64,000 bases of DNA, from assembly GCA_002269645.1 (NCBI GenBank), contig NIVC01001645.1, positions 124,001 through 188,000 of the forward strand, in the 5' to 3' direction. The notes beneath the pieces were generated by a model. That model did no database searches. It saw only the letters and a program-made list of their open reading frames with translations, and had not been told where the DNA came from. The translations under genes and the position numbers were made by a program. The DNA comes from Macrostomum lignano. Its lineage: Eukaryota. Of the stretch, positions 13,465 to 61,399 are shown in pieces. Within the stretch, counting starts at the first letter, position 1, and each line of letters starts with the position of its first letter.

Positions 13465-13606
13465 ACTGAGTGCCGAATAAATTTTGCGACAATACACCGA
13501 TGGTAGCTAATCCACTATACTAAAAATGCTTTGTCTCTTATCCAGTAGTAAATGTCTAGCAGGCTTCTGTTTTATCGTTTTGACTCCCGTAAATTTATTC
13601 ATACAA

Positions 13607-14095
13607 CACGGGCCGGCAAACTCTACGTGCGGCACGCGAAGCCTCTCTATCCGGCCCTCGGGTCCGTTGAAACTTCACAATAGCAATGCGGCCCGCTCAG
13701 GGCTTGCGTCTCTTCTCAACCCTCTCTTCTCTCTCCCCTCTACTCACTTTTTTCTCCTCTCCCCATCTTCTTCCCTCTCTCTTTCCATTTACTCTCATCT
13801 TCTCTCCTTTGACCTCTCAATTCATCTCATCCCATCTTCTCTCATCTCTCTAGCGCCTTCCTCTGCCCCCCTCCTCTCTTCTTTTCTTTCTAGCCTCTCA
13901 TCTCTCCTCTCCTCTGTCTCTGTAGCCTCTTTCTCTCCCCTCCCTTTCCTCTCTCCTCTCTTTTCTCCCAAGCATTCTCCCCTCTCCTCTCCTCTAGCCT
14001 CTCCTCTCTCCGCTCTTCTCTCTCTAGCCTTTCCTCTCTCCGCTCTTCTCTCTCATCTGGCCATTGAGTTAAAAAGTTTGCCAACCTATGATTTA
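13607..14095 (+). mobile_element. Charlie/hAT-like MITE with internal CT-rich microsatellite
   Basis: Imperfect ends CACGGGCCGGCAAAC / GTTTGCCAACCTATG and TGCGGCCC-like motifs. The 5' part and 3' end are shared with a minus-strand copy at ~40940-41340. No TSD found. Confidence 0.6.
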
Positions 14096-14703
14096 CTAGC
14101 GAGAAAAGAATTGTAAGGTTCCGGCCAAGAAATCACAAGTATTAGCGTTTTTTAGATTCTTTAATTTTGACAATTACTATCCAACAGTGTAAGAAAAGTC
14201 ATCTAATCTTCATATGCTCGAGGTGTAGAATTAAAAAACCTGCAAATTAGTTAAAATGAGCCAAATCAGTAAATGTGTATTTCTGTCTATTTAATTTGCA
14301 TGTCTGCTTTTAAGCTGGTACTGCTGCGGCGAAATTTGTTTGAATCATTACTATTTAGTCTCAATATATGGCTTCGTATTTCTCTCCTTAAGAAGGCACT
14401 GAGACTTTTTATTGCATTAAAATGCTTTATATTTGTATCTACAATAAGTTGCATCATTGAATTTGCATTTCACTGCCGTTTGAAAAACACACTGATCTGA
14501 TTTTGTTGCTTTCCAATAGTTTGATATTTTTGTTCTATTCGTCTTTACGAAATCGAGAACTTGTTGCGCAATCTGTCTCTGTGCTTGTTTGATGCTGGAG
14601 GGCTTGGCTAATGATGGAGTATTTGATCTTTTATTTCCTGAAATTCATCTTTCTAGATTGTTTACCTGCTGTGCTTTTCCTTTGCTGTTTCTTCATTCGT
14701 TTG

Positions 14704-15256
14704 AGTCAGTCAGTCAGTCAGTCAGTCAGTCAGTCAGTCAGTCAGGCAGTCAGTCAGTCAGTCACTCAGTCAGTCAGTCAGTCAGTCAGTCAGTCAGTCA
14801 GTCAGTCAGTCAGTCAGTCACTCAGTCAGTCAGTCAGTCAGTCAGTCAGTCAGTCAGTCAGTCAGTCAGTCAGTCAGTCAGTCAGTCAGTCAGTCAGTCA
14901 GTCAGGCAGTCAGTCAGTCAGTCAGTCAGTCAGTCAGCCAGTCAGGCAGTCAGTCAGTCAGTCAGTCAGGCAGTCAGTCAGTCAGTCAGTCAGTCAGTCA
15001 GTCAGGCAGTCAGTCAGTCGGTCAGGCAGGCAGTCAGTCAGTCAGTCAGTCAGTCAGTCAGTCAGGCAGTCAGTCAGTCAGGCAGTCAGTCAGTCAGTCA
15101 GTCAGTCAGTCAGGCAGTCAGTCAGTCAGTCAGTCAGTCAGTCAGGCAGTCAGTCAGTCAGGCAGTCAGTCAGTCAGGCAGTCAGTCAGTCAGTCAGTCA
15201 GTCAGGCAGTCAGTCAGTCAGTCAGTCAGGCAGTCAGTCAGTCAGGCAATCAGTCG
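14704..15256. repeat. (CAGT)n microsatellite with CAGG variants
   Basis: Read directly. Confidence 0.98.
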
Positions 15257-15335
15257 TCACCCTCAGTTCTCAAGCCCATTAATTGGTATTTGAACCGAAA
15301 CTCTGCAGCCAATAGTTGCGACTAAAACGGTCTCC

Positions 15336-17176
15336 ATGGCAACCCAAGCGAACGCCTATCTGAACTACCCGCTGCCGCCTGGCTGGCAGTCCAAGCTGGA
15401 CGCATCCAGCGGTCGTTACTTTTTTGTCGACCACAACAACAAGAGGACGTCCTGGGTTGACCCCAGGCCGGCCTACTATGCTGCGCAGGCATCCGCAATG
15501 CATTACGGTCAGCAGTCTGCTGCTTCTGCGGCTGCGGCCGCATCATCTGCCGCAGCTGCCCCTAAGCCCGCTGCTAAACGAGCTGTCGCTAGCAGCAGCA
15601 GCAGCAGCAGCAGTATTAACGATGCAGCAGACTTCTCATCCGATGACGAGACAGCTAATGCGGCATTGGCTGCTCAGGCTCGCCGAGTTCAGGCCAGCTT
15701 TCCAATGGTTGAGCTGAGTCTTGTCCGCGAGCTGCTGCAGGAGCACGGCAGCGAGGAGTCCGTGCGACAGATGCTCAGGTTGGTGCTCGAGCTACGGCAG
15801 ACATGAGGGCCAATCCCCAAGGCTTGACGATTAGATAGTCAGGGCCGCTTGTACACCCTGTGTGAGCGTGTCTGTAGCTATTACTGTATATTAACTCCCA
15901 GATCCCACCTAATCCATTCGCCGCACTCAGGGAAGTGGTGAGCGACAATCAGCAGCCAGCCTCATCGCGCCAGGGTCGGGCCTCATCGTCCGCTGGCGCC
16001 ACCGCCGCTCCCGCCCTGCCGTCAGCGGAGGAGACCCGCCGATCCAATATTGACACCCTGTGCAGCGATTTCCCCACTCTGGATAGGAAAACTGTTGAAC
16101 AGGAGCTCGCGGCTGCCGGAGATCGCATGTACGATACTAGAATGCGCCTGCGGCACCTGACTGATCAGCAAAGACAGCAGGCCGCTGCCGCAGCCGCTGC
16201 CGCCGCCGCCACTCTCGCCCTGCCGTCAGCGGAGGAGACCCGCCGATCCAATATTGACACCCTGTGCAGCGATTTCCCCACTCTGGATAGGAAAACTGTT
16301 GAACAGGAGCTCGCGGCTGCCGGAGATCGCATGTACGATAATAGAACGCGCCTGCGGCACCTGGCTGATCAGCAAAGACAGCAGGCCGCTGCCGCAGCCG
16401 CTGCCGCCCAGCCTTCGACAAGCGGGCATCCGAAGCCGAAAGCCAAGCCAAAAGTCGCTGAGACGTCCGCCGCTACTCACCAATCCAAGCTGGACTCGCT
16501 GTCTACCGACTTTCCTACTCTGGAGAGAGGCGCCATCGAACGTGAGCTGACAGCCGCAGGCGATCGGCTGTACGACACCCGGACTAAACTGCGACAGTTG
16601 GCCGACCAGCAGAGAGAGGCCGCTTCGGCCGCACTCGCCGACGCTCATTCTGCCGCTGCTCACCCGAAACCGGCAGCTAAAAAGAAGCAACAGTCAGCAA
16701 AGCAGCAGAAGCAGCAGCCGAAGCCGAAGCACTCCAGCCGTGCCTTGTCTCCGTCTGCTGGCACGTCGCTTGGCGCCCAACTGCGACCGTCGCCACCCGA
16801 AGCTGACTCAGTGCAGCCGTCGCTGCAGCATCATGAGAGACGGCAGCCAGTTAAAACAAAATTCAAAGCTAATAATAATAAAAAGAAGTCGGCTGCCAAG
16901 AAGCCCGCCGCCCGCCCAGCCGTCGCCTCTACGCAATGGACCGGGCCAAGCGGCGGGCTGGCCAGCGGCCCGAACCCGGCACTTCTCATTGGCAGCGGCG
17001 CTGGCCGTGAGGATCTGCGCTGCAGCGGACCGGAGCCCGGCCTGGCCAGCGGCCCGAATCGCCAGCTGCTGTCGGGAAGCAGCGGCCTTGCCTGCGGGCC
17101 GCAGTTCGGCCTGGCCGTTGGCTCAGCTGGGGCGGCTTCAACTCGTGTAGGCCGATCAGTGGTCACGGCTATGTAG
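15336..17176 (+). CDS. WW-domain protein with about four CUE-like helical repeats and C-terminal GPxxxL repeats
   Basis: Exons 15336-15778 and 15931-17176 (phase-2 GT-AG). WW: [34 protein letters not shown]-containing CUE-like units: [34 protein letters not shown] x2, [17 protein letters not shown]. Confidence 0.85.
15805..15870 (-). mobile_element. Fragment of the SINE 3' body
   Basis: GCTTGACGATTAGATAGTCAGGGCCGCTTGTACACCCTG matches the reverse complement of 11068-11116. Confidence 0.65.
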
Positions 17177-19802: not shown

Positions 19803-20395
19803 TGGGTGGGCAAGGGATGATGAAGATTAACATTTGACCAGCTTCCATAAAAAACCATCGCTGCTTTGGTGATAAAAAAGTTAAAGCCAGGCTTGCTCAT
19901 TTGATGCTTACAGGTATGAAAAACAATTGATAAATGTTTCATCACTTACCGAATAATGCATAATCAGTGTAGGGATCTTCGCGCTAAGTTTGTATGGTGT
20001 TAATAATGTGTTCCTCCTTTGGTTTGGTTCAATAGCGAAGGTGTTAAGAGGCTGAAGAGCTTTACTGGAGGATGGGACCGCAGGCCTTGTGAGGGGGGGC
20101 CTTTCTATTGAGGTTGGGGGCTCGGAGCGGAGGGGTTGAGGGCGACCTCCCCCCACCGCAGACCCCCATCTCCTCCTCCCTTTCACTTTCTGAGCAGCAG
20201 CTAACAGGGCCGGGTCTTCTCATCCCTTCTTTATAAACCGATGACGCAATCGAGTTTAGTCGGAGCCAATCCCGAGGTATTGATGAGCTCTACGAGAAAT
20301 TAGCCTTTGATCTGCCCCTCTCTTGCTGCTCTGCCAGTTTAGTATTTGATCTCACGATTTGGTGCGAAGTGAATCTGTTGAAGTGGTCGCGGGTT

Positions 20396-20637
20396 GCGCG
20401 CGAAGGCGTATTCAGCATGCCAGTGAAGTATGAGACAGACTAGGCCCATGGGCTAAGGTCTGCGATGCTTCACGCCTGCCCCTATCTTCAGCAGGTCAAG
20501 GCTGGTGGGAGGTCTGCACCCTCTATTTGCCTCTGGCAGCCGCAGACCCCCCCCCCAGGCTGTCTCGCAAGTCGACCCAGGGTACTCGTCCCCGCGTGTG
20601 TTCAAGGCAGTCCCTAGGGCTGCTGGACAGACTGGGC
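20396..20637 (+). ncRNA. HDV-like self-cleaving ribozyme (predicted) at the element 5' end
   Basis: P1 GCGCGC 20396-20401 / GCGTGT 20593-20598 with G1-U wobble. P3 GGG/CCC. L3 TACTCGT. P1.1 AC/GT. P4 GGCAGTCC-CTA-GGGCTGCT. J4/2 CAGAC. P2 CCCA/TGGG. Long structured J1/2. Confidence 0.8.
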
Positions 20638-20914
20638 TCCGGCGCTGGCGACCCTATCCAGTGGCTTCGGCCGAATTTGGGTATGCGGGTCTGGCTCGCC
20701 AACCTGCAGGCCGTGGTACTGCTTAACGTACTCTCTAATGCCTAAGGTGTTGACCGTGCCGATGGGCTGGAAGGCCGGGGAGTAGTCCGGTCGCAAGCGG
20801 TCCCCCTCCTGGTGTCGGGCCAGCCTTGAGGGTGCTATTGGCCTACTGCCCGGTCAGGTGGAGCGGCCGGGTGGGTACCGCGCCCCTTTGAGGGTAGCCC
20901 ACCAACCTTTTATC

Positions 20915-22419
20915 ATGGCCTTCGAGCCGACTATGGATAAACAAGCTATTTCTAGGGACGGGGACCCTTCTAAACCCCAACCTCAGTCTGAAGGACCGGC
21001 CGGCCCTGCTGGCAGATCCCAACCGACTGATTCAACTGTGGCAAAGGAAGGACCGGCTGGCTCTGCTGGCAGATCCGACCAGAGCTACCAAACTCAAAAT
21101 ACCCTAAGACCTGCCAGCTCCGCTGGTGGATCTAAGGGAACCGCGAGCTCTGAGCCTAAAGGACCGGCCAAACCTGGCAGATCCGATGAAGCTCAGCGGG
21201 CTCGGCTTGAGCGCAAACGCGCTAAACAACGCGCCAAAAGGCAGGCCAAGAAGGGAGCTGCGGGGGCCAAAGCGGCGGCGTCCACCATGGATGCTGAAGC
21301 GACTGGAGTCCCAAGGCAACCAGGCGGGCCGGCCGGTGGAAGCTCCAGTAGTTCAGCGGCGGCGCTCCCTGGAGCTGCTGCCGCGGCTGCTGAGGCCGAA
21401 ACCACGGCGCAACAAATGGCCACTGCCAACAAGGAGGTTCCTTCGGGAGCTACCTTTGCGGCGAAGGCCAAGGCCAAAATCCCGGGAGTGATCATCCAAG
21501 GTCGCGACCAGGACTGGACCACTGATCAGCTTCAAAAAGTGTGGAGTGCTGTTGACTCCTATCTGATTGAGCTGACTGTCGAGGAGGGAATCTCCATCGG
21601 CGTTGAGCGGATGGTGCTGCGAAGCACATTCGTTCTTATTGCTCCTAGCAGCGAGGAGGACGCTCGGCGGCTGCTCCAGCGGCTACCGACGTTCTCCTTG
21701 GATGCTGACCTTGGCGGAGCTCTTTTTCTTCGCGAGGGCCAGCGTCCAAAGACGATACCCTATGTGGTTTTCGTCCCTGCTAAGAGCACCGCAGCTGGAC
21801 CAGACGTTATTCGCCGGGTCCTACTGCGTCTGAACCCCGACCTCCCTGCTAGTGGACTGGTGTATCACCGTAAAGTCCGCAGGGGGGAGACGGGCAACTC
21901 AATTGTCCTCGGCCTTTCCAGCACTTGGGCGAGTCGGTACCCTAATGGATCCTCTTTCCAGCTGGGTGCCCTCAAGCTCAAGTTGCGCCGAGGAAAGTCT
22001 GCCAAAGGGAAGGCTACTGCCAACCCCGGCATCTCCGGCAAGAGCGGGGCGCAGTCTAAGGCCCAAGGAAAGGCGCAAGCCGATCCCAAAGCCAAAGCTG
22101 CATCTCGCCCCTCTGCTAGCAGCAGTTCGGCGACCGCGGTAACGGCTCCGGCCGAGCCCCGGGAACCAAACCTGCCAGTCGGAGAAGGAGTTGAGGACGA
22201 GGCCGGGTCTTCGGAATCCGAGCTCTCCTCGGCCACCTTGGTGGGGTCTGAAGGTAAAGATGCAGGTGAGGAAGCTTCCTCCATCCTGTCATCGGAGCCT
22301 GAGGACTCTGCTGGGGGGCCGGTGGGGGTGAGGAGGCCATGGACGTCGACCAACTCCCATCTCCCAGTCAAGCCCCAGCGGCCTGGGACGAGGACGATCT
22401 GTTGTCCAAGTCTCCTTGA
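20915..22419 (+). CDS. Retrotransposon ORF1 (basic N-terminus, RRM/DUF4780-like core); one 1-nt frameshift near 22320-22330
   Basis: ATG 20915. In the -1 frame after the G-runs the sequence reads EEAMDVD...DEDDLLSKSP* (TGA 22417-22419). No CCHC knuckles. The DUF4780 assignment is from recalled similarity only. Confidence 0.75.
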
Positions 22420-22458
22420 TGGCCCTGGGCTCTAGCCAGATATTGCATTTAATACAGT

Positions 22459-25400
22459 ATGACTAAGCTCCACGCTGCCAAAGGAGCGACATTCTGTCTG
22501 CAAATAAATTTACAGCATTGCGTATCTGCGTCAGTAAATCTGATGAAGATTGCTGAGCTGTACAGGCCAGGCCTCATCCTGATCCAGGAACCCTGGATGC
22601 GCAACGGTAAGTTGCCCAACATTCCCTCTGGCTACTCTGATTTTTATGTGTGTGGCCCGGGGAACAGCCGCCCTAGAGCGGCTATCCTCGCTGCTAGCCA
22701 TCTCCAGGCTTGGCTGAGGACTGATCTCTCTGATGGAGACCTTTGCGTCATCCAATCTAATCATTTCTCTCCGCGTACGTGTCTTGTTGCCTCGGTTTAT
22801 ATCCCAGGCGACAGAGACCCTGCTCCGAGAGTTTACTGCGCCTTGCGCAGTACTGCGAGTCCCAGAACGCTGAGCTGTGCTTAGGGGGCGACCTCAACGC
22901 GCACCACAAGCACTGGGGCAGCAAAGATACCAACACTAGAGGAGAGGAGCTTCTGGCCCTCATCTCTAACACAAACCTCATGCTCTGCAACCGCGGCAGC
23001 ACTCCTACCTTTAATAATGGCAGATGGACCGAGGTCCTCGACGCCACACTCGTTACCCCAAGACTCTTTGACAGAGTCAAGGAGTGGAGAGTCTGGTCTG
23101 AGGAGCCCTCCCTGTCTGACCACTGCTTTATCGCCTTTAATATCGCGGACACTAAAACCCAGTCTCCGATCACTTGGAGACGCAATATCCGCAACACTGA
23201 TTGGGCGGCCTACAAGGCTGCCCTTGATCTGCACCTGCAGGAACTCACGGACTTACGTCCGATTGAGACCTGCGAGGATGTGGATCATATGGCTGAGACG
23301 CTGACAGGTTGCATTATTGCAGCCTACGAAGCGGCTTGTCCTGCTCGCGCCTACAGAGGCAAGACCTCGGCGCCGTGGTGGAACCCGGAGCTGGGGAAAC
23401 TCAGGCGGAAGGCCAAAAGCCTTCATCGCCGTGCCATGAAGACCGGAAACCCGGAGGACATGGAGCTTTTCCGGCAAGCCTCCCGCAATTTCAAATCTGA
23501 AGTGCGCAAGGCCAAGGAATGTAAGTGGCGCCAATTCTGCAATGAATTGGATCAAGACAGACCTACTTCTAGGCTTGTCAAGGCCCTTACAATGGACAAA
23601 ATGTCCAAATTAGCCATGATCAAAAAAGATGATGGCTCTCTTACTAAAGACCCTGAAGAAGTGCTTCAGCATATGCTTAGCACATTCTTCCCGAGGGTAC
23701 CTACTGCTAGACCGGAGCCCAACCATTCGATGGATGGAGCCACCCTAGCGGCGGGCATTGTCACTGAAGACCTAATCGCTCGTGCGGTCAGAACCTTCAA
23801 ACCCTTCAAATCTCCTGGACCTGATGGTATCTACCCTGTTCTCCTTCGTGAAGCAGCCAAGATACCCTCGTTCCTGAGACTCACCCGCAATCTTATGCGG
23901 GCCTCTATCCAGCTGGGATACGTTCCCAAAAGCTGGACTGAAGCTCGAGTAGTCTTTATTCCCAAACCTGGGAAGGGTGACTACCAAAGCGTCAAGGCCT
24001 TCCGGCCAATTAGCTTAACGTCAGCAATGCTTAAGCTCACTGAGAGGCTTATTCTCTGGCGGCTGCTCTCCTGCGAGCTGACAGCGATGCCCCTCAGCAA
24101 TAATCAGCACGCCTTCCGTACCGGGAGGTCGACTGACAGCGCCCTGCATGCGATTGTCGAAAAGATTGAACGGGCGGTACTGGGTGACGGTTACGCCCTG
24201 GCTCTCTTTCTTGACATTGTTGGCGCCTTCGACAACGTTATCTTTGAAGCGTTTCAGAGGGCCCTTCAAAATCGCAAAGCTCATGCTACCCTCATACGGT
24301 GGATCATGTACATGATCTCCAACCGTACGGTCACTGCCCAACTTCTTGGGCAAACTGCCTCCACCAGAGTCTGTAAGGGTGGACCCCAAGGCGGAGTCCT
24401 CACCCCGACGCTCTGGAACCTGGTCATGGACGCTCTTCTGAGTGACTCCCGACCTGACCCCGTCTTCAAAGTCGGGTATGCTGATGACGTCACGGCCATT
24501 GTGGCAGGACCGTCTCCAGCACGCTCAGGGATCTGATGCAGAGCTTTATCCGCAAAGCAGAATCCTGGGCCAATGACAATGGTTTGGAACTCTCTGAGCC
24601 CAAAACCGTTGCCATTATGTTTACCAGCAGACTACGCTGGAACATACGTCCTCTGCAGCTCTACGGCAGAGATATTGCCTTCGCGCACCAGACCAGATGT
24701 CTCGGGGTCACACTTGACCACCGGCTCAACTGGTCCTTCCACGTGAAAGCAAAAGCTAAGCGTGCCTCAGCCATCCTGGCCCAGCTCCGACGAGCACTTG
24801 GCACTTCTTGGGGTCTATCCCCAAAGCGGCTTTGGTGGATCTATACTTCCGTAGTTAGACCTGCCATTACGTACGCCTCTGTTGTCTGGGTTAGCGCTAC
24901 CCAGGTCAAAAGCCATGCAGACCTGCTCAACACGATCCAAGGCAGAGCGTGTAGGCTCATCTGCAACGCCACCAGGTCCACGCCCTTTGCTGGCATGGGG
25001 GCCTTTCTTAATCTTCCGCCTCTTGACCTCTTCATCAGGGGTGAGGCGGCTAGAACGACGCGGCGTCTAATTGATGCCGGCGTCAAATTCATTTACATGA
25101 GAGCACCTGCTAAGCGGAACCTTGTCCCGCATAGCGATCTGTGCCTCAACTTTCTCAACGAGTGTCAGGCCAATCGCGTCTTCACCGATGGCATTGCCTC
25201 AACGCTCAACCTGAGACAGCGCTACTCCGTAGCTATCGACTCGCGCGATAACATCAATGACCATTGGAACCCTGGTGAGCTTCATTGCTACACCGACGGT
25301 TCTAAGCAGTCAGCCAACACCGGCTTTGGTGTTGGAATCTTTCTGAACGGGAGGGTCATCGCTACCCACGCTCAATACACTGGGGTCAACTCCAGTGTTT

Positions 25401-26197
25401 TCCAAAATGAAGTTCTGGCCATCAGCTCCTGCACTGCAGAGCTTCTCGCCACTGGCGTTACTGGTAAGAACATCATTTTCCATTCGGACAGCCAAGCTGC
25501 CTTGCACGCCATCAGTGGCTGCAGCACCAACTCTGCTACAGTCCTTGACTGTATCAAACTCCTCAATATGTTGGGTTCCGCCAACAAAATTACCCTTAAG
25601 TGGGTTCCGGGGCATGTGGGGATCCGAGGAAATGAGTTGGCTGACACCCTTGCAAAAGTTGGTGCCTCCGGCTCCTCTCTCGGCCCCGAACCTCTTGTCC
25701 CGATTCCTGGCTGTGTCATCGACTCGCGCATCAAAGCGTGGATCAGGACTCAGCACCGCTCGACTTGGGCGAACCGCACGAACTGCAGGCAATCCAGAGG
25801 CGCTGTCCCTCAGCCCTCTCACCAGCTCCGGAAGCTCCTCTTGCGCCTCTCGCGCAGAGACATCCGGGCTGCCACCATGACCCTCTCTGGTCATGGCTGC
25901 TTCTCCAGGCACCAGTACCTGCAGGGCAACGCCACCAACGCCACCTGTAGTTTCTGCAACTCAGGTGACGAAACCGCTGAGCATTTCGTCAGCATCTGTC
26001 CCGCCTTCACGCGGGCCAGACTCACTTACCTCGGGCCACACACATCTATTACTGAAGCGTGCAAACCCGAAAACTTTAATCAGCTCATGCGCTACCTTCG
26101 GGCCACCCGCAGGGCTGAACTCTCCTTTCCAGAGAGCACCATAGCTGCTGGCGACACTGGGGGACCTCCCTGGGCGGCGCCAACCCTCCGTCCATAG
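22459..26197 (+). CDS. Retrotransposon ORF2 (APE endonuclease, RT, RNase H, C-terminal Zn motif); two 1-nt frameshifts near 22830 and 24520
   Basis: APE: QINLQH, LIQEPW, GGDLNAHHKHWG, SDH. RT: PGPDG, FRPISL, FLDIVGAFD, GGPQGGVLTPTLWN, YADD. RNase H: YTDGS, FQNE, SDSQAAL, WVPGH..IRGNELAD. Confidence 0.95.
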
Positions 26198-26411
26198 CGA
26201 CGCGTCGGCCGTTCAGGGACTAGCGGAATGGGCGCCCGCGCCTTCCCGCTGTGTCCCCTCCGGGACAGCCCTGCAGCTAAGTCAAGTAAGTCAAGGTCGC
26301 GGGTTCGGTCTTTACAGGTGCTTGATTATGCTGAGTGACTGGGGCCGGTTGTTAGTTACTGCCAGTTGGGGGACCATATGGCTGGCCCTTGGATTCTTGG
26401 CGCCCTGGAGA

Positions 26412-27432
26412 AAATGAATTGGAGGTTGAGAAGGTAGAGAAGGTAGAGAAGGTAGAGAGGGTTGAGAAGGTAGAGAGGGTAGAGAAGGTAGAGAAGGTAG
26501 AGAAGGTAGAGAAGGTAGAGAAGGTAGAGAAGGTAGAGAAGGTAGAGAGGGTTGAGAAGGTAGAGAGGGTAGAGAAGGTAGAGATGGTAGAGATGGTAGA
26601 GATGGTAGAGAAGGTAGAGAGGGTAGAGAAGGTAGAGAAGGTAGAGAAGGTAGAGTGGATGGAGAGGGTAGAGAAGGTAGAGTGAGTAGAGAGGTTAGAG
26701 AAGGTAGAGAGGTAGAGAGGGTAGAGAGGGTAGAGTGGGTAGAGAAGGTAGAGAAGGTAGAGAGGGTAGAGAAGGTAGAGAAGGTAGAGAGGGTTGAGAA
26801 GGTAGAGAGGGTAGAGAAGGTAGAGATGGTAGAGAGGGTTGAGAAGGTAGAGAGGGTTGAGAAGGTAGAGAGGGTTGAGAAGGTAGAGAGGGTAGAGAAG
26901 GTAGAGATGGTAGAGAAGGTAGAGAAGGTAGAGAGGGTTGAGAAGGTAGAGAGGGTAGAGAAGGTAGAGATGGTAGAGAAGGTAGAGAGGGTAGAGATGG
27001 TAGAGAAGGTAGAGAAGGTAGAGAGGGTTGAGAAGGTAGAGAGGGTAGAGAAGGTAGAGTGAGTAGAGAGGGTAGAGAAGGTAGAGAAGGTAGGGTGGAG
27101 AGGGTAGAGAAGGTAGAGAAGGTAGAGTGAGTAGAGAGGGTAGAGAAGGTAGAGTGGGTAGAGAGGGTAGAGAAGGTGGAGTGGATGGAGAGGGTAGAGA
27201 GGGTAGAGAAGGTAGAGAGGGTAGAGAAGGTAGAGTGGGTGGAGAGGGTAGAGAAGGTAGAGTGAGTAGAGAGGGTAGAGAAGGTAGAGAAGGTAGGGTG
27301 GAGAGGGTAGAGAAGGTAGAGAGGGTAGAGAGGGTGGAGAGGATAGAGAAGGTAGAGACGGTAGAGAAGGTAGAGAGTGTAGAGAAGGTAGAGATGGTAG
27401 AGAAGGTAGAGTGGGTAGAGAGGGTAGAGAGG
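26412..27432. repeat. 9-bp purine-rich array (AGAAGGTAG)n
   Basis: Read directly; lies outside the 3' TSD. Confidence 0.95.
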
Positions 27433-32106: not shown

Positions 32107-35100
32107 ATGAAACCGGCTAGCGAATTGCCTCGCCAGCACTGGGACTCTCAGGTAGAGTTCGTGCTGTCCGCTGTGGGATTCGCCATCGACTTGGCCAACG
32201 TGTGGCGGTTTCCCTACCTGTGCTACAAGTATGGCGGCGGTGAGTTGCTGTGCGGCTGCGGCCAACTGGGGATGGGGTACAGGGGGATGGGGTACAGGGG
32301 AATGGGGGACAGGGGATGGGGGACAGGGGAATGGGGAACAGGGGGATTGAGAACGGGGGATTGAGAACAGGGGATGTGGAACGGGGAACGGGGGATGGGG
32401 AACGGGGAATGGGGAACGGGGAATGGGGAACGGGGAATGGGGAACGGGGAATGGGGAACGGGGAATGGGGAACGGGGAATGGGGAACGGGGAATGGGGAA
32501 CGGGGAATGGGGAACGGGGAATGGGGAACGGGGAATGGGGAACGGGAATGGGGAACGGGGAATGGGGAACGGGGAATGGGGAACGGGGAATGGGTAATAG
32601 GGGAATAGGGAACAGGGGAATGGGTAACAGGGGAATGGGTAACAGGGGAATGGGGAACAGGGGAATGGGGAACAGGGGATGGGTAAAAGGGGAATGGGGA
32701 ACAGGGGAATGGGTAATAGGGGAATGGGGAACAGGGGAATGGGTAACAGGGGATGGGTAAAAGGGGAATGGGGAACAGGGGAATGGAGAACAGGGGAATG
32801 GGTAACAGGGGAATGGGGAACAGGGGAATGGGTAACAGGGGAATGGGGAACAGGGGAATGGGTAACAGGGGAATGGGTAACAGGGGAATGGGTAACAGGG
32901 GAATGGGTAACAGGGGAATGGGTAACAGGGGAATGGGTAACAGGGGAATGGGTAACCGGGGAATGGGTTACAGGGGAATGGGTAACAGGGGAATGGGTAA
33001 CCGGGGAATGGGTTACAGGGGAATGGGTAACAGGGGAATGGGTAACGAGGGAGTGTACGGGAAAAGGAAATTGCAAAAATGTAATCAAACGTGCAAGCAA
33101 TAGCAATAGCGCTAAAAGTACAAACTACCCCTACTCCAACACTCCTCAGGCGCCTTCCTCATCCCTTACATCGTGTGCAACATATTCCAAGCGATGCCCC
33201 TGCTTTACCTGGAGATCAGCCTGGGCCAGACACAGCAGGCTGGCTGCATCCAGGTGTGGGACGTGTCACCGGCTGGCAGGGGCATCGGAGTGGCGCAGTG
33301 CCTGCTTGGCATCGGCATGTTTTATTATAACGTCATGGTTGGCTGGTGCATATTTTTCTTCTTCAACTCGTTCACGGCTGGCGAGCTGCCCTGGATGACC
33401 TGCGGGCACGACTTCAACACGCCATGGTGCCGCACGGTGGACCAGTTCCGCAATCTGTCTGCGCTCAACCAGACTGGTGACTCTGTGCTCTCGTCTGTTG
33501 AGTACTTTGAGTGAGTTGCCTTGGATCTGAACTGACACCTTTAGATCCGAACTGACACCCTCAGCTCCAATCTGACACCCTCAGATCCGATCTGACACAC
33601 TCAGATCCAATCTGACACACTCAGATCCAATCTGACACACTCAGATCCGAACTGACACACTCAGATCCGATCTGACACACTCAGATTTGAACTGACACCC
33701 TCAGATTTGAACTGACACCCTCAGATCCGAACTGACACACTCAGATCCGAACTGACACACTCAGATCCGAACTGACACACTCAGATCCGAACTGACACAC
33801 TCAGATCCGAACTGACACACTCAGATCCAAACAGACACACTCAGCTCCAATCTGACACACTCATATCCAATCTGACACACTCAGATCCAATCTGACACAC
33901 TCAGATCCAATCTGACACACTCATATCCAATCTGACACACTCAGATCCAATCTGACACACTCAGATCCGAACTGACACACTCAGATACGAACTGACACAC
34001 TCAGATCCGAACTGACACACTCAGATCCAAACAGACACACTCAGATCCGAACTGACACACTCAGATCCGAACTGACACACTCAGATCCGAACTGACACAC
34101 TCAGATCCGAACTGACACACTCAGATCCGAACTGACACACTCAGATCCGAACTGACACACTCAGATCCGAACTGACACACTCAGATACGAACTGACGCCC
34201 TCCAGTGCACACCAAAGTCGATAATTTTAGTAACAGAAACTTTTTCATTTAAAGCCCTAACAAATTAATTAATTTGTCATTGACTTTTTCCCACACTTCT
34301 CTAGTTGCCACCCTTTTTGAGTGATGATTACTCCGAAGCCAATTGACAGAAATTAGCAAGTCTTTCCTCTAGAATCCCAGCAATAAAAGCAATAAAAGCA
34401 ACACACAGGCTTCGCTACAAGCAATTATGTCAAGTAATAGTTTTTGAGTATCGTTTTGCACCGCCAGCGCAACCCTCGACGCAACCGGGGCCTGCCCGGA
34501 AAGTTTGACAGCTTTTCGCCTATCGCCTAAGCTCGCATGCTGGGCAAAATTGCTTCGGCACAGCTGGTCTCATCTCGACAAGTTAATTAAGTCTAATTAG
34601 AAGGATAAAAATTATCCGCTCAGAGTGCTGCTGCCGCCACACTGTGGCTTCTTAATTAATTAACAGTCCTCAATTACCCTTGCTAAGTTGAACTTGTGCA
34701 CTGGACAGATTTACTCCGAACTCTGAAGCAATAACTTTTGAAATTCTGTGTCATTTAGGGATAAGAGACAGGAGAGTGCCAGAAGAGACAGGAGAGTGCC
34801 AGAAGAGACAGGAGAGTGCCGGCAGAGAGACATGAGAGTGCCAGAAGAGACAGGAGAGTTCCAGAAGAGACACGAGAGTGCCAGAATAGACAGGAGAGTG
34901 CCGGCAGAGAGACAGGAAAGTGCCAGAAGAGACGGGAGAGTGCCAGAAGAGACACGAGAGTGCCAGAAGAGAGACAGAAGAGTGCCAGAAGAGACAGGAG
35001 AGTGCCAAAAGAGACAGGAGAGTGCCAAAAGAGACAGGAGAGTGCCAGAAGAGACGGGAGAGTGCCGGCAGAGAGACAGGAGAGTGCCAGAAGAGACACG

Positions 35101-38100
35101 AGAGTGCCAAAAGAGACAGGAGAGTGCCAGAAGAGACAGGAGAGTGCCAAAAGAGACAGGAGAGTGCCAGAAGAGACAGGAGAGTGCCAAAAGAGACAGG
35201 AGAGTGCCGGCAGAGAGACATGAGAGTGCCAGAAGAGACACGAGAGTGCCAAAAGAGACAGGAGAGTGCCCGCAGAGAGACATGAGAGTGCCAGAAGAGA
35301 CACGAGAGTGCCAGAAGAGACAGGAGAGTGCCGGCAGAAAGACAGGAGAGTGCCTGAAGAGACAGGAGAGTGCCTGCAGAGAGACAGGAGAGTGCCAGAA
35401 GAGACAGGAGAGTGCCAGAAGAGACGGGAGAGTGCCCGCAGAGAGACATGAGAGTGCCAGAAGAGACACGAGAGTGCCAGAAGAGACAGGAGAGTGCCGG
35501 CAGAAAGACAGGAGAGTGCCTAAAGAGACAGGAGAGTGCCGGCAGAAAGACAGGAGAGTGCCAGAAGAGACAGGAGAGTGCCAGAAGAGACACGAGAGTG
35601 CCAGAAGAGACAGGAGATGTGCCGGCAGAAAGACAGGAGAGTGCCTGAAGAGACAGGAGAGTGCCTGCAGAGAGACAGGAGAGTGCCAGAAGAGACGGGA
35701 GAGTGCCCGCAGAGAGACATGAGAGTGCCAGAAGAGACACGAGAGTGCCAGAAGAGACAGGAGATGTGCCGGCAGAAAGACAGGAGAGTGCCAGAAGAGA
35801 CAGGAGAGTGCCAGAAGAGACAGGAGAGTGCCAGAAGAGACGGGAGAGTGCCCGCAGAGAGACATAAGAGTGCCAGAAGAGACACGAGAGTGCCAGAAGA
35901 GACACGAGAGTGCCTGCAGAAAGACAGGAGAGTGCCTAAAGAGACAGGAGAGTGCCGGCAGAAAGACAGGAGAGTGCCAGAAGAGACAGGAGAGTGCCAG
36001 AAGAGACGAGAGAGTGCCCGCAGAGAGACATGAGAGTGCCAGAAGAGACACGAGAGTGCCAGAAGAGACAGGAGAGTGCCGGCAGAGAGACAGGAGAGTG
36101 CCAGAAGAGACAGGAGAGTGCCAGAAGAGACGAGAGAGTGCCCGCAGAGAGACATGAGAGTGCCAGAAGAGACACGAGAGTGCCAGAAGAGACAGGAGAG
36201 TGCCTGCAGAGAGACAGGAGAGTGCCAGAAGAGACACGAGAGTGCCAGAAGAGACAGGAGAGTGCCAGAAGAGACAGGAGAGTGCCAGAAGAGACACGAG
36301 AGTGCCAGAAGAGACAGGAGAGTGCCAGAAGAGACAGGAGAGTGCCAGAAGAGACAGGAGAGTGCCCGCAGAAAGACATGAGAGTGCCAAAAGAGACAGG
36401 AGAGTGCCAGAAGAGACAGGAGAGTGCCAGAAGAGACAGGAGAGTGCCGGCAGAAAGACAGGAGAGTGCCAGAAGAGACAGGAGAGTGCCGGCAGAAAGA
36501 CAGGAGAGTGCCAGAAGAGACGGGAGAGTGCCGGCAGAAAGACAGGAGAGTGCCAGAAGAGACAGGAGAGTGCCGGCAGAGAGACAGGAGAGTGCCAGAA
36601 GAGACAGGAGAGTGCCAGAAGAGACAGGAGAGTGCCAGAAGAGACAGGAGAGTGCCAAAAGAGAGACAGGAGAGTGCCGGCAGAAAGACAGGAGAGTGCC
36701 AGAAGAGACGAGAGAGTGCCTGCAGAGAGACACGAGAGTGCCAGCAGAGACAGAGTTTCACAATAGCTTTCGTACATCTTTACGCAGCTGTCATTCCGAA
36801 AGACAGAACTTTAATTAGCAGAAGATAAAAAAAAGTTTGACATGCTGGAGGGTTTAAAGGCGCAGAGTAATCACTGAGTTGCAGGCCTTCTCCAGCGCTA
36901 AATGCGCACTGAAGTGACCTTAACGGTTGGTTCGCCCCCCGCTACTCATCAAGTGCGCACAGTGAGCTATATGCTCTCACAGTGGAAGACCCAATTAGCC
37001 TGAGCAGGCTGCGAATTGAGAACCCTAATTAATTTACAACCTGCTGCTATCTTGGCTGCCTGGCGTCACAAAAAGTGAGGCGGGCACCGGCTCAGCTGAG
37101 CATTTTGAGCGGTTGGTTAGATGAAGAGGACTCGAATTTTAGATTTTTTATTGTTCCTTTCATCGCTAACTCAAGCGCCCTCAAAGCAGGTTGTGTGTGT
37201 GCCCCATCGCTCTTATACTCATACTGTCATGATAGCAGCTGCCAGGCAGAAATTAGAGATGGACGGCACCCCCCGCTCTTGGGGCTACTCTGCGTCGCGA
37301 GTAAATTTTGTAAATTGTTCGTTGTTGCTTTATTATCGGAATTTAAACAGGACGAGAGGGTACAGATGGAGGCACATTGTCTTTATGAATCGCAACTTTT
37401 GGCACTGCACTTTTTTGAGTTTGTCCTCTCTGAGTTTCACTTTGAGTCCTCTTCTGAGTTTTACTGCATAACTTAGTTAGTGACAGGTAGAGGGGGGAAT
37501 TAGTGATAGGTAGAGGGGGGAATTAGTGACAAATAGAGGGGGAATTAGTGACAAGGTAGAAGGGGGAATTAGTGACAGGTACAGGATAGATTAATTAGTG
37601 GCAGATATAGAGTGTGAAATTGGAGACAGGTACAGGGGGAAAAGTGACAGGTAGAGGGGGGAAAGGTACACGTAGATGAGGGAAAAAAGGGACAGGTAGA
37701 TGCAGGAACAGGTGACGGGTAGAAATTCGTAGAGTATTTAAAATTCCAATTCACTGCAGATTTAAAAAATACGGATTTTAAAACGGAGCAAAAATATTAA
37801 GCGCTAGCAGACAAACAAAACAACACCGAAAAAACCTCACCTCCCCTGCCAGACGCGGCCTGCTGGCGGTGCACCAGAGCCCGAACATCGAGACCCTGGG
37901 CAGGCCCCGGTTCGTGCTGGTTGCCTGCATCTTCATTGCCTACGCAATCATATTCTTTGCCCTCTGGCGCGGAATCAAGTCATCCGGCAAGGTGGTGTAC
38001 ATCACCGCCACCATGCCCGTGCTGCTGCTCGTCATCCTGCTGATCAACGGAGTACAGCTGCCTGGCGCCACCAAGGGTATCGACTATTACATTCGGCCGG

Positions 38101-41100: not shown

Positions 41101-44100
41101 GAGGAGAGAGGAGAAGGAGAGGAGAGAAGAGAGAGGAGAGGAGAGAGGAGAGGAGAGAGAAGAGAGGAGAGAGGAGAGAGGAGAGAGGAGAGAGGAGAGA
41201 GGAGAGAGGAGAGAATGTAGAGAAGGGAACTGAGAAGAGCCGCAAACCTTAATTGCTATGGCCGGATTGCTATTTTGAAGTTTCAAAGGACCCGAGGGCT
41301 GGATGGAGAGGCTCTGTGGGCCGCATGTGGCCTGATTAAAATAGAAAAAAAAGAATTTAATTAGAATTTTATTTAATTTAAAGTAGATAAGAGCGCGCAG
41401 TAGAAAGTCAGAAGGGGGTTGAAAAAGTTGTACACTCTTAGCTTGAGAGGCGATCGATAGCCGATGTACAGCAATTAAATAAGAATTTTTAAAAGGGCAG
41501 AGAGTAGATAAGGCCGCACACGCAAGACTGCGTCTTCTGAACCCCTTCAGGGCGGCATGTACGTCTGGAATCTGCAGAACAACTTCGTCCCCGGCCTGTC
41601 TCTGATCTTCATCGCCTTCTGCGACGCTGTAGCCATCGCCTGGCTGTACGGTGAGATCCGTGATCTTTGTCTGCGTTTCCCAGGCAAAGAAGTGCGAATG
41701 GATTTTAACGGCACAAAATAGTTGTAAAAATGATGCTTTAAAATTATCAAACTGGCGTAAATAAAACAAAAAAGTTGTCCCAAAAGCGCTTAATGAGTTT
41801 TCAAAATGGCGCTTGAATAGTCGTTATCAAAATGGCGCTTGAATAACTATCAAAATGGCGCTTGAATAGCTATCAAAATGGCGCTTGAATAGCTATCAAA
41901 ATGGCGCTTGAATAGCTATTAAAATGGCGCTTGGATAGCTATCAAAATGGCACTTGAATAGCTATCAAAATGGCGCTTGAATAACTATCAAAATGGCGCT
42001 TGAATAGCTATCAAAATGGCACTTGAATAGCTATCAAAATGGCGCTTGAATAGCTATCAAAATGGCACTTGAATAGCTATCAAAATGGCGCTTGAATAGC
42101 TATCAAAATGGCACTTGAATAGCTATCAAAATGGCGCTTGAATAGCTATTAAAATGGCGCTTGAATAGCTATCAAAATAGCACTTGAATAGCTATCAAAA
42201 TGGCGCTTGAATAGCTATCAAAATGGCGCTTGAATAGCTATCAAAATGGCGCTTGAATAGCTATTAAAATGGCGCTTGAATAGCTATCAAAATGGCGCTT
42301 GAATAGCTATTAAAATGGCGCTTGAATAGCTATCAAAATGGCACTTGAATAGCTATCAAAATGGCACTTACGAGTAAATAGCTATCAAAATGGCGCTTGA
42401 ATAGCTATTAAAATGGCGCTTGAATAGCTATCAAAATGGCGCTTGAATAGCTATCAAAATGGCACTTGAATAGCTATCAAAATGGCACTTGAATAGCTAT
42501 CAAAATGGCACTTGAATAGCTATCAAAATGGCACTTGAATAGCTATCAAAATGGCACTTGAATAGCTATCAAAATGGCACTTGAATAGCTATCAAAATGG
42601 CACTTGAATAGCTATCAAAATGGCGCTTGAATAACTATCAAAATGGCGCTTGAATAGCTATCAAAATGGCGCTTGAATAGCTATCAAAATGGCGCTTGAA
42701 TAGCTATTAAAATGGCGCTTGAATAGCTATCAAAATGGCACTTGAATAGCTATCAAAATGGCGCTTGAATAACTATCAAAATGGCGCTTGAATAGCTATC
42801 AAAATGGCACTTGAATAGCTATCAAAATGGCGCTTGAATAGCTATCAAAATGGCACTTGAATAGCTATCAAAATGGCGCTTGAATAGCTATTAAAATGGC
42901 GCTTGAATAGCTATCAAAATAGCACTTGAATAGCTATCAAAATGGCGCTTGAATAGCTATCAAAATGGCGCTTGAATAGCTATCAAAATGGCACTTAAAT
43001 AGCTATCAAAATGGCGCTTGAATAGCTATTAAAATGGCGCTTGAATAGCTATCAAAATGGCACTTGAATAGCTATCAAAATGGCACTTGAATAGCTATCA
43101 AAATGGCACTTGAATAGCTATCAAAATGGCACTTGAATAGCTATCAAAATGGCACTTGAATAGCTATCAAAATGGCACTTGAATAGCTATCAAAATGGCA
43201 CTTGAATAGCTATTAAAATGGCACTTGAATAGCTATCAAAATGGCACTTGAATAGCTATCAAAATGGCACTTGAATAGCTATCAAAATGGCACTTGAATA
43301 GCTATCAAAATGGCACTTGAATAGCTATCAAAATGGCACTTGAATAGCTATCAAAATGGCACTTGAATAGCTATCAAAATGGCGCTTGAATAGCTATCAA
43401 AATGGCGCTAAAATATTGATCAAAATGGCGCTAAAATATTGATCAAAATGGCGCTAAAATAATGATCAAAATGGCGCTAAAAAAGCTGCAAAAATTGGGC
43501 TTAAAATCTTTTTATTAATGCTAAAAAGGTATTTTAAAAAGTGATTTAAAGTATCGACCTAAAAAAGCCAAGGATGGAATAAAATAAAAGATCAATCTCT
43601 AAAATAGTGTATCTAAGTAAAACTAAACATTACTTTTTTACTTTTTCAGCCGCAATAGCAAACTACAGTAGAATTTAAAAAGTTGTGCAGCATTTAATTG
43701 AATCCATTCACGCTATGGTTTATTGAAGGAGATCTGCTGTCTGCTGTCTTCAGCCTCCAGTGCATGACCTCCCGCTGCGCCCGCTATTAAAGTGAGCAAT
43801 TAAAATCCAATTAACCTCCCACCACAGGTCTGGACGAGTTCTGCTCCGACATCAAGAATGCGATCGGCATCTCGCCTGGCATCTTCTGGCGCATCACCTG
43901 GAAGATCATATCGCCCGCGTTCATTCTGGTGCGTCTGGTGGCGCAAATTCTAATAATACCTAACCGCCTCAATTGTTTTCATATTGCAACGGTGCCATTA
44001 TATTACTGCTTTGCGTACTCGTAGTAGTCTAGCAGGAATTTTAGAATCTGGACAGGTTTCGTAGGGAAAGAAAGAAATTAAGAAATTATGAAACCTATGA

Positions 44101-50300: not shown

Positions 50301-51766
50301 AACCGTATTTGTCTGTCCAATCAGTGCTTGCTGACAGGAGAATTTGCTTAATAAATCACCGCTGGTCATTGATAAGGACCACATGATTACAGGATGAAGC
50401 TATCGCTGAATGGTTTAGCGATAATTAAAAACAAATCTATGAGACAGGATTTTGCTGCGCCGAAATTATTCCATGGCTGAATATAGATTCTCGTTGCAAG
50501 GATTTGGGATTACTATGGAATTAGGCTTTAAGTACCATGGATTCGAGATTAGACACCTGGGATTCTGAAATAAAATACCTGGATTATGGAGTAAGACCTG
50601 GAATTTTCAAGTAAAACACCTGAATTCTGGATTAAAACACCTGGGATTCTGAACAAAAACACCTGGGATTAGAAACAAAAACACGTGTGATTCTGAAAAA
50701 AACACCTGGGATTCTGAACAAAAACACCTGTGAATCTGAACAAAAACACCTGGGATTCTGAACAAAGACACCTGTGAATCTGAACAAAAACACCTGTGAA
50801 TCTGAACAAAAACACCTGTGATTCTGAACAAAAACACCTGGGATTAGAAACAAAACACCTGGGATTAGAAACAAAAACACCTGGGATTAGAAACAAAAAC
50901 ACCTGGGATTCTGAAAAAAACACTTGGGATTAGAAACAAAAACACCTGGGATTAGAAACAAAAACACCTGGGATTCTGAACAAAAACACCTGGTCACCAC
51001 TGCAGCCACCCATCACCTCATGCATCACCGCTGCAACCTGATCAAGTGACGATGTTCAACTCACCAAGTAGCGATTCCTGGTGAGCAGGAACAGTGAAAA
51101 CGGCACAACAATCGCTGTAGTCGCGTGAGTAGACGGAAAGCCGTACTCAAGTTCGTATCGCCTCTCCAGTTTAGCCACAGGCGGACTGGCTGGCCTAGGA
51201 CTCCTAATGAGGTCCTTGAGAGCCTGGCCGAACCACATTGAGAAGCCCCAGGCGATGACAACCCGACGACAAACGTAGCCATCAACGTTCCAGAACCAGT
51301 AGGGGAAAAATGTACAGTTGAATTCCTCATTGCCAAGCATTGCACCGAATGTGAACAGATGATAGAGGAATAGATTCTTAATCTTGTAATCAACGTTGTT
51401 TCGCATCGAATAGTCCATTAAAGTGTTTTGTACTCGACATTTTACACTATCTGTCCAAGATTGCGATTTGACGTCCTCGGCTACAGCGCTGTGAATTTTA
51501 TTCTTTTGCTGTTGCTGCTTGCCGCCAGCTGTGCTGCTCTGTGCTCTGCGCCGGACCGCAGCTGCAGTTATCGATGCGTCCTCGGCCCCGGAGTCCGTCA
51601 GATCCGTATCGCAGTTATTATTGGAGTCCTCATCTTCTTCCTCCTCGTCCATAGAGTTCAATCCGCTGTCCTTGTAGCCAATGTCGATGCCGCAGACATC
51701 CTGAAAGCTGGCTACCAGCTTTGGATTATTCAACTGCTCCACCAGGTGCTTGATAGATTCCAGCAT
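47383..51766 (-). CDS. SGPP1: Sphingosine-1-phosphate phosphatase (PAP2 family)
   Basis: Exons 51766-51065, 49528-49439, 48540-48298, 47721-47383. Motifs KDLIRSPRP, EYGFPSTH, SRIYLGMHSVL|DV, WNSARGD, VELPYKFVTY. SGPP1 versus SGPP2 orthology is not resolvable. Confidence 0.93.
47750..48262. repeat. 20-bp minisatellite (AATGAACCTGAAGGAATCTT)n, SGPP intron 3
   Basis: Read directly. Confidence 0.95.
48716..49070. repeat. 21-bp minisatellite (AAATGAAATGGCGCCCTTCCC)n, SGPP intron 2
   Basis: Read directly. Confidence 0.95.
49600..49912. repeat. 35-bp minisatellite (CAGTGACAAATGGCAGAATGTCACTGCATTCATCT)n, SGPP intron 1
   Basis: Each unit has an 8-bp inverted repeat CAGTGACA/TGTCACTG. Confidence 0.95.
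50560..50993. repeat. ~22-bp minisatellite (CTGGGATTCTGAACAAAAACAC)n, SGPP intron 1
   Basis: Read directly. Confidence 0.93.
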
Positions 51767-59447: not shown

Positions 59448-61360
59448 TCTGTGGAAACTGTAGAACCAGTGTTGGAAACTGTGGAATCAGAGTTGGAAAC
59501 TGTGGAATCAGAGTTGGAAACTGTGGAATCAGAGTTGGAAACTGTGGAATCAGAGTTGGAAACTGTGGAACCAGTGTTGGAAACTGTGGAATCAGAGTTG
59601 GAAACTGTGGAATCAGAGTTGGAAACTGTGGAATCAGAGTTGGAAACTGTGGAATCAGAGTTGGAAACTGTGGAATCAGTGCTGGGAACTGTGGAATCAG
59701 TGTTGGAAACTGTGGAATCAGAGTTGGAAACTGTGGAATCAGTGCTGGGAACTGTGGAATCAGTGCTGGGAACTGTGGAATCAGTGCTGGGAACTGTGGA
59801 ATCAGTGCTGGGAACTGTGGAATCAGGGCTGGAAACTGTGGAACCAGTGTTGGAAACTGTGGAACCAGTGTTGGAAACTGTGGAATCAGTGTTGGAAACT
59901 GGAACCAGTGTTGGAAACTGTGGAATCAGAGTTGGAAACTGTGGAACCAGTGTTGGAAACTGTGGAATCAGAGTTGGAAACTGTGGAATCAGTGCTGGGA
60001 ACTGTGGAATCAGTGTTGGAAACTGTGGAACCAGTGTTGGAAACTGTGGAATCAGTGTTGGAAACTGTGGAATCAGAGTTGGAAACTGTGGAATCAGAGT
60101 TGGAAACTGTGGAATCAGTGTTGGAAACTGTGGAATCAGTGTTGGAAACTGTGGAATCAGAGTTGGAAACTGTGGAATCAGAGTTGGAAACTGTGGAATC
60201 AGTGTTGGAAAGTGTGGAACCAGTGTTGGAAACTGTGGAATCAGAGTTGGAAACTGTGGAACCAGTGTTGGAAACTGTGGAATCAGAGTTGGAAACTGTG
60301 GAATCAGTGCTGGGAACTGTGGAATCAGTGTTGGAAACTGTGGAACCAGTGTTGGAAACTGTGGAATCAGTGTTGGAAACTGTGGAATCAGAGTTGGAAA
60401 CTGTGGAATCAGAGTTGGAAACTGTGGAATCAGTGTTGGAAACTGTGGAATCAGTGTTGGAAACTGTGGAATCAGAGTTGGAAACTGTGGAATCAGAGTT
60501 GGAAACTGTGGAATCAGTGTTGGAAACTGTGGAATCAGTGTTGGAAACTGTGGAACCAGTGTTGGAAACTGTGGAATCAGTGTTGGAAACTGTGGAATCA
60601 GTGTTGGAAACTGTGGAATCAGTGTTGGAAACTGTGGAATCAGTGCTGGGAACTGTGGAATCAGTGTTGGAAACTGTGGAATCAGAGTTGGAAACTGTGG
60701 AATCAGAGTTGGAAACTGTGGAACCAGTGTTGGAAACTGTGGAATCAGAGTTGGAAACTGTGGAATCAGTGCTGGGAACTGTGGAATCAGTGCTGGGAAC
60801 TGTGGAATCAGTGCTGGGAACTGTGGAATCAGTGCTGGGAACTGTGGAATCAGGGCTGGAAACTGTGGAACCAGTGTTGGAAACTGTGGAACCAGTGTTG
60901 GAAACTGTGGAATCAGTGTTGGAAACTGGAACCAGTGTTGGAAACTGTGGAATCAGAGTTGGAAACTGTGGAACCAGTGTTGGAAACTGTGGAATCAGAG
61001 TTGGAAACTGTGGAATCAGTGCTGGGAACTGTGGAATCAGTGTTGGAAACTGTGGAATCAGTGCTGGAAACTGTGGAATCAGTGTTGGAAACTGTGGAAT
61101 CAGAGTTGGAAACTGTGGAATCAGAGTTGGCAACTGTGGAATCAGAGTTGGAAACTGTGGAATCAGAGTTGGAAACTGTGGAATCAGTGTTGGAAAGTGT
61201 GGAACCAGTGTTGGAAACTGTGGAATCAGTGTTGGAAACTGTGGAATCAGTGTTGGAAACTGTGGAATCAGAGTTGGAAAGTGTGGAACCAGTGTTGGAA
61301 ACTGTGGAATCAGAGTTGGAAAGTGTGGAACCAGTGTTGGAAAATGTGGAATCAGAGTTG
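59448..61360. repeat. 21-bp minisatellite (GAAACTGTGGAATCAGAGTTG)n with a 1027-bp internal duplication
   Basis: The rare variant CAGGGCTGG at 59824 and 60851 is each followed by the same 19-bp short unit. Confidence 0.96.
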
Positions 61361-61399
61361 GTAAATCCCACTGGCCCCAAAAACCGCGCCCGCCCCGCC

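Follow-up and report, generated by a model that had tools for sequence, protein, structure and literature searches.

How a retrotransposon that seems to lack a promoter comes to have a defined 5' end is the question raised by a 5.9-kb element of the flatworm Macrostomum lignano. It lies within a stretch of 64,000 nucleotides (nt) of contig NIVC01001645.1 (assembly GCA_002269645.1, positions 124,001 to 188,000) that was analysed whole and is called the window here; all coordinates below are positions in it. A preliminary description of the window had proposed that the element opens with a hepatitis delta virus (HDV)-like ribozyme. The first 241 bases of the element (20396-20636, + strand) are probably a genuine HDV-like ribozyme module at the 5' end of a LOA-like element family, a reading that draws on descriptor scans, shuffled sequences and a verified list of base pairs, and the predicted cut falls between U20395 and G20396. 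Whether the copy described here has kept its activity is a closer matter, and we would put the chances at even or barely better.

The element itself is bounded by an exact 11-nt target-site duplication (TSD), GGTCGCGGGTT, at 20385-20395 (+) and again at 26295-26305 (+). A terminal tandem repeat, (TAAGTCAAG) x2, stands directly before the 3' copy (26278-26295, +), and G26295 may belong to either, closing the element or opening the TSD. Together the 11-nt duplication and the simple 3' terminal repeat are hallmarks of target-primed reverse transcription. Because the 5' TSD ends at 20395 the element starts at G20396, and the earlier claim that the predicted G1 is the base right after this TSD holds exactly. 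Two open reading frames (ORFs) follow on the + strand. ORF1 (20915-22435; 506 residues from its ATG, in a frame open from 20858) is 98% identical to pieces of M. lignano gene models in UniRef, which identifies the host and bears out the suspicion that it is not an insect; a Pfam search of the element's proteins matched no family in ORF1. ORF2 (22459-26197) encodes APE endonuclease, reverse transcriptase (RT) and RNase H, detected as the Pfam domains Exo_endo_phos_2, RVT_1 and RNase_H, and is interrupted by two frameshifts, near 22812-22818 and near 24509-24521, which tblastn of relatives located and which leave it in three frames.

The APE-RT frame (22779-24536) has 'lian-aa1 retrotransposon protein' as its best named relative (identity 40%, over 96% of the query). 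Lian is a member of the LOA clade, in which RNase H follows RT in every known element (PMC2790886), and the same architecture, two ORFs with an ORF2 composed of APE, RT and C-terminal RNase H, is found here. The best named match and the domain set thus place the element as a LOA-like retrotransposon lacking long terminal repeats (non-LTR), in agreement with the LOA-type assignment made initially. Judged from its sequence it is a young insertion, defective in this copy; young, in view of its flawless TSDs and the 98% identity of its ORF1 to other copies.

Within the first 241 bases the canonical order P1, J1/2, P2, P3, L3, P3', P1', P1.1, P4, J4/2, P2' is found, with all pairs checked by script and all features on the + strand. 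The 5' strand of P1, GCGCGCG (20396-20402), pairs over 7 base pairs (bp) and free of any mispair with CGCGUGU (20593-20599), giving a duplex of about -10 kcal/mol that fits the published pattern GNNNNN*:NNNNNY. Its first pair, G20396-U20599, is the closing wobble that the preliminary description had named, and involves the predicted +1 nucleotide, which is also the first base of the element. P2 is formed by CCCA (20576-20579) with UGGG (20633-20636), a 4-bp helix beyond which come an A20575 x C20637 mispair and then G20574-U20638. P3 (20580-20592) consists of three Watson-Crick G-C pairs, GGG/CCC (20580-82/20590-92), enclosing L3, UACUCGU (20583-20589), whose first base is U and sixth is G and which fits 6 of the 7 positions of the published TYYHCG*Y. 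The misfit is at position 2, an A where the pattern asks for Y; this A20584 pairs with U20601, and P1.1 therefore keeps its two pairs, C20585-G20600 and A20584-U20601, with a 3' strand, GU (20600-20601), that fits the published 'RN'.

The 3' strand of P1 comes directly after P3', since the extra pair G20402-C20593 leaves no gap between the two. P4 (20602-20627) abuts P1.1 at one end and C20628 at the other; it is built from U20602-A20627, C20603-G20626, an AA/G internal loop, 8 bp (20606-13/20617-24) and a CUA loop. J4/2 is CAGAC (20628-20632), fitting the published CNRA*, and its first base, C20628, is the candidate catalytic cytosine, the catalytic cytosine of HDV-like ribozymes being the first J4/2 position (PMC10879173); an optional last J4/2 nucleotide also belongs to the HDV-like motif. 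Junctions of zero length occur at P2/P3, P3'/P1', P1'/P1.1, P1.1/P4 and P4/C20628.

Every sequence element that the preliminary description named is present in the window and in the right order, but each coordinate 3' of L3 was given one position too low. Accordingly its 6-bp P1 (20396-20401/20593-20598) is extended to seven pairs; its P1.1, drawn between A and C of L3 and a GU, has the right pairs with the GU displaced from 20599-600; its 4-bp CCCA/UGGG P2 survives with the 3' strand moved from 20632-35; and its catalytic C20627 gives way to C20628, the first base after P4.

The remaining segment, J1/2 (20403-20575, +), is a peripheral insert of 173 nt. In its minimum-free-energy fold (-67.8 kcal/mol, z-score -1.56) it forms several hairpins (20423-31/20465-73, 20511-17/20542-48), among them the self-folding helices quoted initially, and its centroid fold is multi-hairpin and shows no clear helix closing the region. 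Ten consecutive C (20547-20556) lie inside it, just 3' of the GCAGACC stem, and could slip in replication or pair with G-rich segments. When P1, P3 and P4 are forced on 20396-20636 the energy is -96.9 kcal/mol, against an unconstrained minimum of -99.7 kcal/mol, with P2 and P1.1 uncounted; the gap is only 2.8 kcal/mol, so the ribozyme fold can compete with alternative folds. The P4 region (20602-20632) folds at -12.1 kcal/mol (z-score -1.97) and the P2 duplex is weak at -4.1 kcal/mol, while the 3' core, folded in isolation, yields P2, P3 and P4. An alternative 6-bp P1 at 20415-20420 was rejected, being weaker than the 7-bp helix and away from the element boundary.

How often such a fold would arise by chance was estimated with descriptors of graded strictness. 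Our canonical descriptor called for a P1 of 7 bp that opens with G-U, a GC-rich P3 of 3 bp, an L3 of 7 nt with U at position 1 and G at position 6, a 2-bp P1.1, at least 5 bp in P4, a C with 3-4 nt after it, a P2 of no fewer than 4 bp and a J1/2 of at most 700 nt. It matched once in the 128 kb of the window's two strands, with G1 at 20396, and this core alone was matched by a broader descriptor, one wide enough to find the human CPEB3 ribozyme too (a sequence used for checking the scanner code only). Among dinucleotide shuffles of the 5' untranslated region (UTR) anchored on base 1, 0/3000, 1/20000 or 11/20000 matched, depending on the descriptor. Because these descriptors were written after the candidate had been seen, we also re-implemented the published Luptak-lab RNArobo hdv descriptors (PMC4870747 supplement), in code that recovers a published sea-urchin ribozyme. 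Relaxed to a J1/2 of up to 700 nt and at most 2 defects anywhere, the published descriptor admitted 6 +1 positions in the window, 2 of them from this core, and 24 positions in 133 kb of unrelated loci, a background of ~1e-4 per position; 6/5000 anchored shuffles qualified, and 0/5000 with at most 1 defect. A cluster of matches to relaxed HDV descriptors at 62797-63535 (+) was rejected as low-complexity false positives in or beside repeat arrays, namely (TGTGGC)n / (TGTGGCTGTGGCTG)n at 63279-63897 and a 20-mer at 62160-62791.

The fold elements, their order, their excess over chance and the coincidence of G1 with the element boundary are direct observations, and a fold of this kind would be met by chance at precisely the element's opening base with a probability of roughly 1e-5 to 1e-3. 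The ribozymes of baggins, R4, Dong and L1Tc cut exactly at the 5' end of their elements (PMC3774820, PMC6765202); this precedent and the low chance value together make a real ribozyme the best reading of the locus.

This reading must be tempered by several observations that weigh against it. All helices of the fold that was at first called complete are present, but neither Rfam nor the published descriptor as written recognizes it. No Rfam family reached its gathering score anywhere in the window, and an Infernal-type covariance check of 20300-20800, of the kind originally suggested, matched no HDV-family model even at E <= 10; the Rfam search yielded only two noise long non-coding RNA matches on the minus strand, and a tRNA scan found none. 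The suggested check with HDV-like descriptors came out divided, with the single canonical match at 20396 on one side and failure of the published RNArobo descriptor on the other. Three elements cause that failure: a J1/2 of 173 nt where 51 is the limit; a P2 of 4 contiguous bp (6 bp if the A20575 x C20637 mispair is included) where 6-7 are asked for; and A at L3 position 2 where Y is asked for. P2 also falls under the minimum for R2 ribozymes (at least 5 bp). The fold is known from a single copy, and since ORF2 is frameshifted in this copy the ribozyme may have acquired mutations too. The canonical motif occurs in none of the sense-strand 5' regions of L001-L007, seven relatives 30-52% identical in ORF2 that derive from metagenomes, Logan, Lasius niger and Drosophila palustris and whose 5' ends are undefined or truncated. 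Fold z-scores against shuffled sequences are modest, -1.2 to -2.0.

Some of these points carry less weight than others. The z-scores count neither for nor against the fold because the method leaves out pseudoknots, and the negative from the relatives is weak evidence at most, since their UTRs are unalignable in addition to the state of their 5' ends. The 51-nt ceiling on J1/2 is a limit of the search rather than of the family, because in active R2 ribozymes P1 and P1' lie 23 to >700 nt apart (PMC3774820), and structured J1/2 domains can activate large ribozymes (PMC4908430). The limit on P2 length likewise belongs to the search descriptor rather than to the family definition.

Several of the same observations could instead mean that the family has or had a working ribozyme and that this copy is a relic, dead or very slow owing to its 4-bp P2, its L3 A or private mutations. 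We regard this as unlikely. The insertion carries two ORF2 frameshifts, its P2 is shorter than the family norm of ~7 bp as well as the R2 minimum, the A20575 x C20637 mispair resembles a single-base defect in P2, and natural R2 ribozymes lose cleavage by single-base changes in L3 or P1 (PMC3774820). Yet the perfect TSDs and near-identical ORF1 mark the insertion as young, the L3 A keeps P1.1 through its pair with U20601, and P2 mismatches are tolerated in one third of R2 ribozymes (PMC3774820).

Chance resemblance is a poorer explanation still, and we consider it very unlikely. The GC-rich 5' UTR would then be merely structured, as an internal promoter or as a protein-binding or translation element, with the 5' end set by transcription initiation; some non-LTR elements do have internal promoters starting at base 1 (PMC3774820). 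The search behind the preliminary description was made after the fact, and when HDV descriptors are made very loose, 1-6% of positions and as many as 11% of anchored shuffles satisfy them, so that the case rests on the strict canonical features; the missing Rfam match, the weak z-scores and the relatives' lack of the motif could be read in the same direction. Against this stand the low match probability at the exact base under canonical or published-descriptor criteria and the nature of the features that match, which are the conserved ones (the G-U start, U and G of L3, G of P1.1, the first C of J4/2, and CNRA*). A promoter and a ribozyme are, moreover, compatible, as L1Tc has both (PMC3383444).

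Less probable again is a real ribozyme in an alternative 3' register, noticed in the preliminary description and indeed visible in the sequence though starting at C20672 rather than C20671, in which CGAAUU (20672-77) and UGGGU (20678-82; together 20672-20682, +) would supply J4/2 with catalytic C20672 and a 5-bp P2 with ACCCA (20575-79), around a P4 that is a 70-nt two-hairpin domain: P2 would gain a pair, CGAA is the J4/2 of CPEB3-type and sea-urchin ribozymes (PMC4870747) and P4 is highly variable in R2 ribozymes (PMC3774820), but CGAA would be set apart from P2' by two surplus U, the P4 region would be longer than the 54 nt that the published loose limit allows, the local fold pairs C20672 and C20671 with G20635 and G20636, and in the primary register C20628 directly follows P4 with CAGAC fitting CNRA*, all of which makes it the less likely variant.

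If the module with the primary register is functional, its action can be modelled on that of its family, from which catalysis, co-transcription and any translation role are borrowed. The element, which has no demonstrated promoter, would be transcribed inside a longer host or read-through RNA. In that RNA P1, P1.1 and P4 would stack on one axis and P2 and P3 on the other, and the U20395-G20396 phosphodiester would be attacked by the 2'-OH of U20395, with C20628 and a Mg2+ ion held by the U20583/G20588 pair of L3 as catalysts. The freed element RNA would start with a 5'-OH on G20396; it could then be translated and copied by target-primed reverse transcription, and a full-length insertion would start exactly at G20396, adjoining the TSD.

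About 4.6 kb upstream of the element and on the same strand lies an ORF with a WW domain (15336-15806, +; Pfam E = 9.5e-12), with neighbouring + strand ORFs at 13526-17176. The WW-domain ORF may belong to a host gene whose read-through could supply the co-transcript.

Among the closest functional parallels is baggins, which is classed in the LOA clade. The HDV-like ribozyme of this Drosophila non-LTR element, whose discovery PMC3774820 and PMC6765202 credit to Ruminski et al. 2011, occupies the very 5' end and cleaves at the element's first nucleotide, and the same is predicted for the M. lignano element; the two elements are of the same or a closely related type, and in both the proposed role is release from read-through or intronic co-transcripts. 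They differ in host, insect as opposed to flatworm, and the M. lignano module has its 173-nt J1/2 and a P2 of only 4 bp, a comparison made by description, not by sequence. With R2, R4 and Dong (PMC3774820) the module shares the double pseudoknot, P1' right after P3/L3, a P1 of 6-7 bp, a large and variable distance between P1 and P1', and the conserved U and G of L3 and C of J4/2. R2 itself, however, is site-specific in 28S ribosomal DNA, with a single ORF and a restriction-like endonuclease, and many R2 ribozymes cut upstream in 28S sequence, whereas the M. lignano element is of APE type, has two ORFs and is inserted elsewhere.

In sequence the core is closest to the CPEB3/sea-urchin (drz-Spur) type, from which it differs in its long J1/2, short P2 and A-U pair in P1.1. 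Those ribozymes have an L3 of UUCACGU or UCCACGU where it is UACUCGU here, and they share the GU 3' strand of P1.1, a J4/2 of CNRA* and, in one sea-urchin family, P3 GGG/CCC; unlike the present module they are compact (~70 nt, with a J1/2 of 1-8 nt and a P2 of 7-8 bp). A large structured J1/2 domain between P1 and P2 does occur in the Anopheles ribozyme drz-Agam-2 (PMC4908430), but there P1 and P2 are 'pinched' together by one long P1.2 helix with short linkers and by a P2 of 12 bp. In L1Tc of Trypanosoma cruzi a self-cleaving RNA at or near the 5' end again sets the transcript 5' end, although L1Tc is an ingi-clade element whose 77-nt ribozyme also serves as a promoter (PMC3383444). Among flatworm retroelements, Schistosoma non-LTR elements and short interspersed nuclear elements carry ribozymes as well, of the twister-variant or hammerhead kind rather than HDV-like, and an HDV-like ribozyme has been predicted in planarian R2 (PMC3774820). 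HDV-like ribozymes located at the 5' ends of non-LTR elements are thus already established, and the literature bears out the initial statement that they occur in R2, L1Tc, RTE and baggins; what is new is the host, and our literature search found no paper linking Macrostomum with an HDV-like ribozyme.

Further copies were sought in several ways. By blastn the window contains no second copy of the element, and exact-protein look-ups with P0001, P0003, ORF1 from its ATG and a 50-residue ORF spanning the core gave no match. Searching again with the ORF1 protein stripped of its low-complexity parts found nothing, and an ORF1-based locus search and a core DNA pattern sought in metagenome contigs each returned 0. 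Four M. lignano gene models in UniRef (P0001, P0002, P0003, P0026, named UBC9, GPCR and similar) are chimeras that start or end with fragments 86-100% identical to the element's ORF1 or ORF2; the family must therefore be multi-copy, and it contaminates annotation. Among the more distant relatives, three metagenome contigs (L001, L002, L006) and a Logan assembly (L007) hold related APE-RT-RNaseH elements, 39-52% identical over the RT part, and L001 has a much shorter ORF1 of ~290 residues. The ORF1 of Lian-like relatives (L005) is DUF4780, whereas that of the M. lignano element has no Pfam family. The N-terminal part of the latter (20982-21186) contains imperfect direct repeats at 57-nt and 168-nt spacing (GAAGGACCGGC...CTGGCAGATCC), which encode repeated EGPAGPAGRS-like peptides.

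The surroundings of the element are highly repetitive. The window is full of long minisatellite arrays (61 Tandem Repeats Finder rows), for example at 26423-27430, 34763-36753, 41786-43478 and 59452-61361, and a 9-mer array, (AGGTAGAGA) x113, begins ~120 bp downstream of the element's 3' TSD. Many of the long 'ORFs' in the window are minisatellite repeats read in frame. An ORF on the minus strand (51056-51766) has a sub-threshold match to PAP2 (phosphatidic acid phosphatase; 26.0 bits against a cut-off of 27.2) and may be a host exon.

More tentatively, the ribozyme might be active despite its 4-bp P2, the A-U pair in P1.1 and its 173-nt J1/2, with J1/2 holding P1 and P2 together, and 5' processing might be an old trait of the LOA lineage that descriptors have missed outside insects. 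Ribozymes in both a flatworm LOA-like element and insect baggins would, if the former is active, imply that the trait is old and vertically kept.

No new class of mechanism is opened by these results. If the module is active, it would carry HDV-like 5' processing in LOA-type elements beyond the insects, into a flatworm that is a lophotrochozoan model. It would also provide a natural example of the fold with a short P2 and a large J1/2, helping to define what the fold tolerates and to widen search descriptors, and it would explain how seemingly promoterless elements in the very repeat-rich M. lignano genome come to have defined 5' ends.

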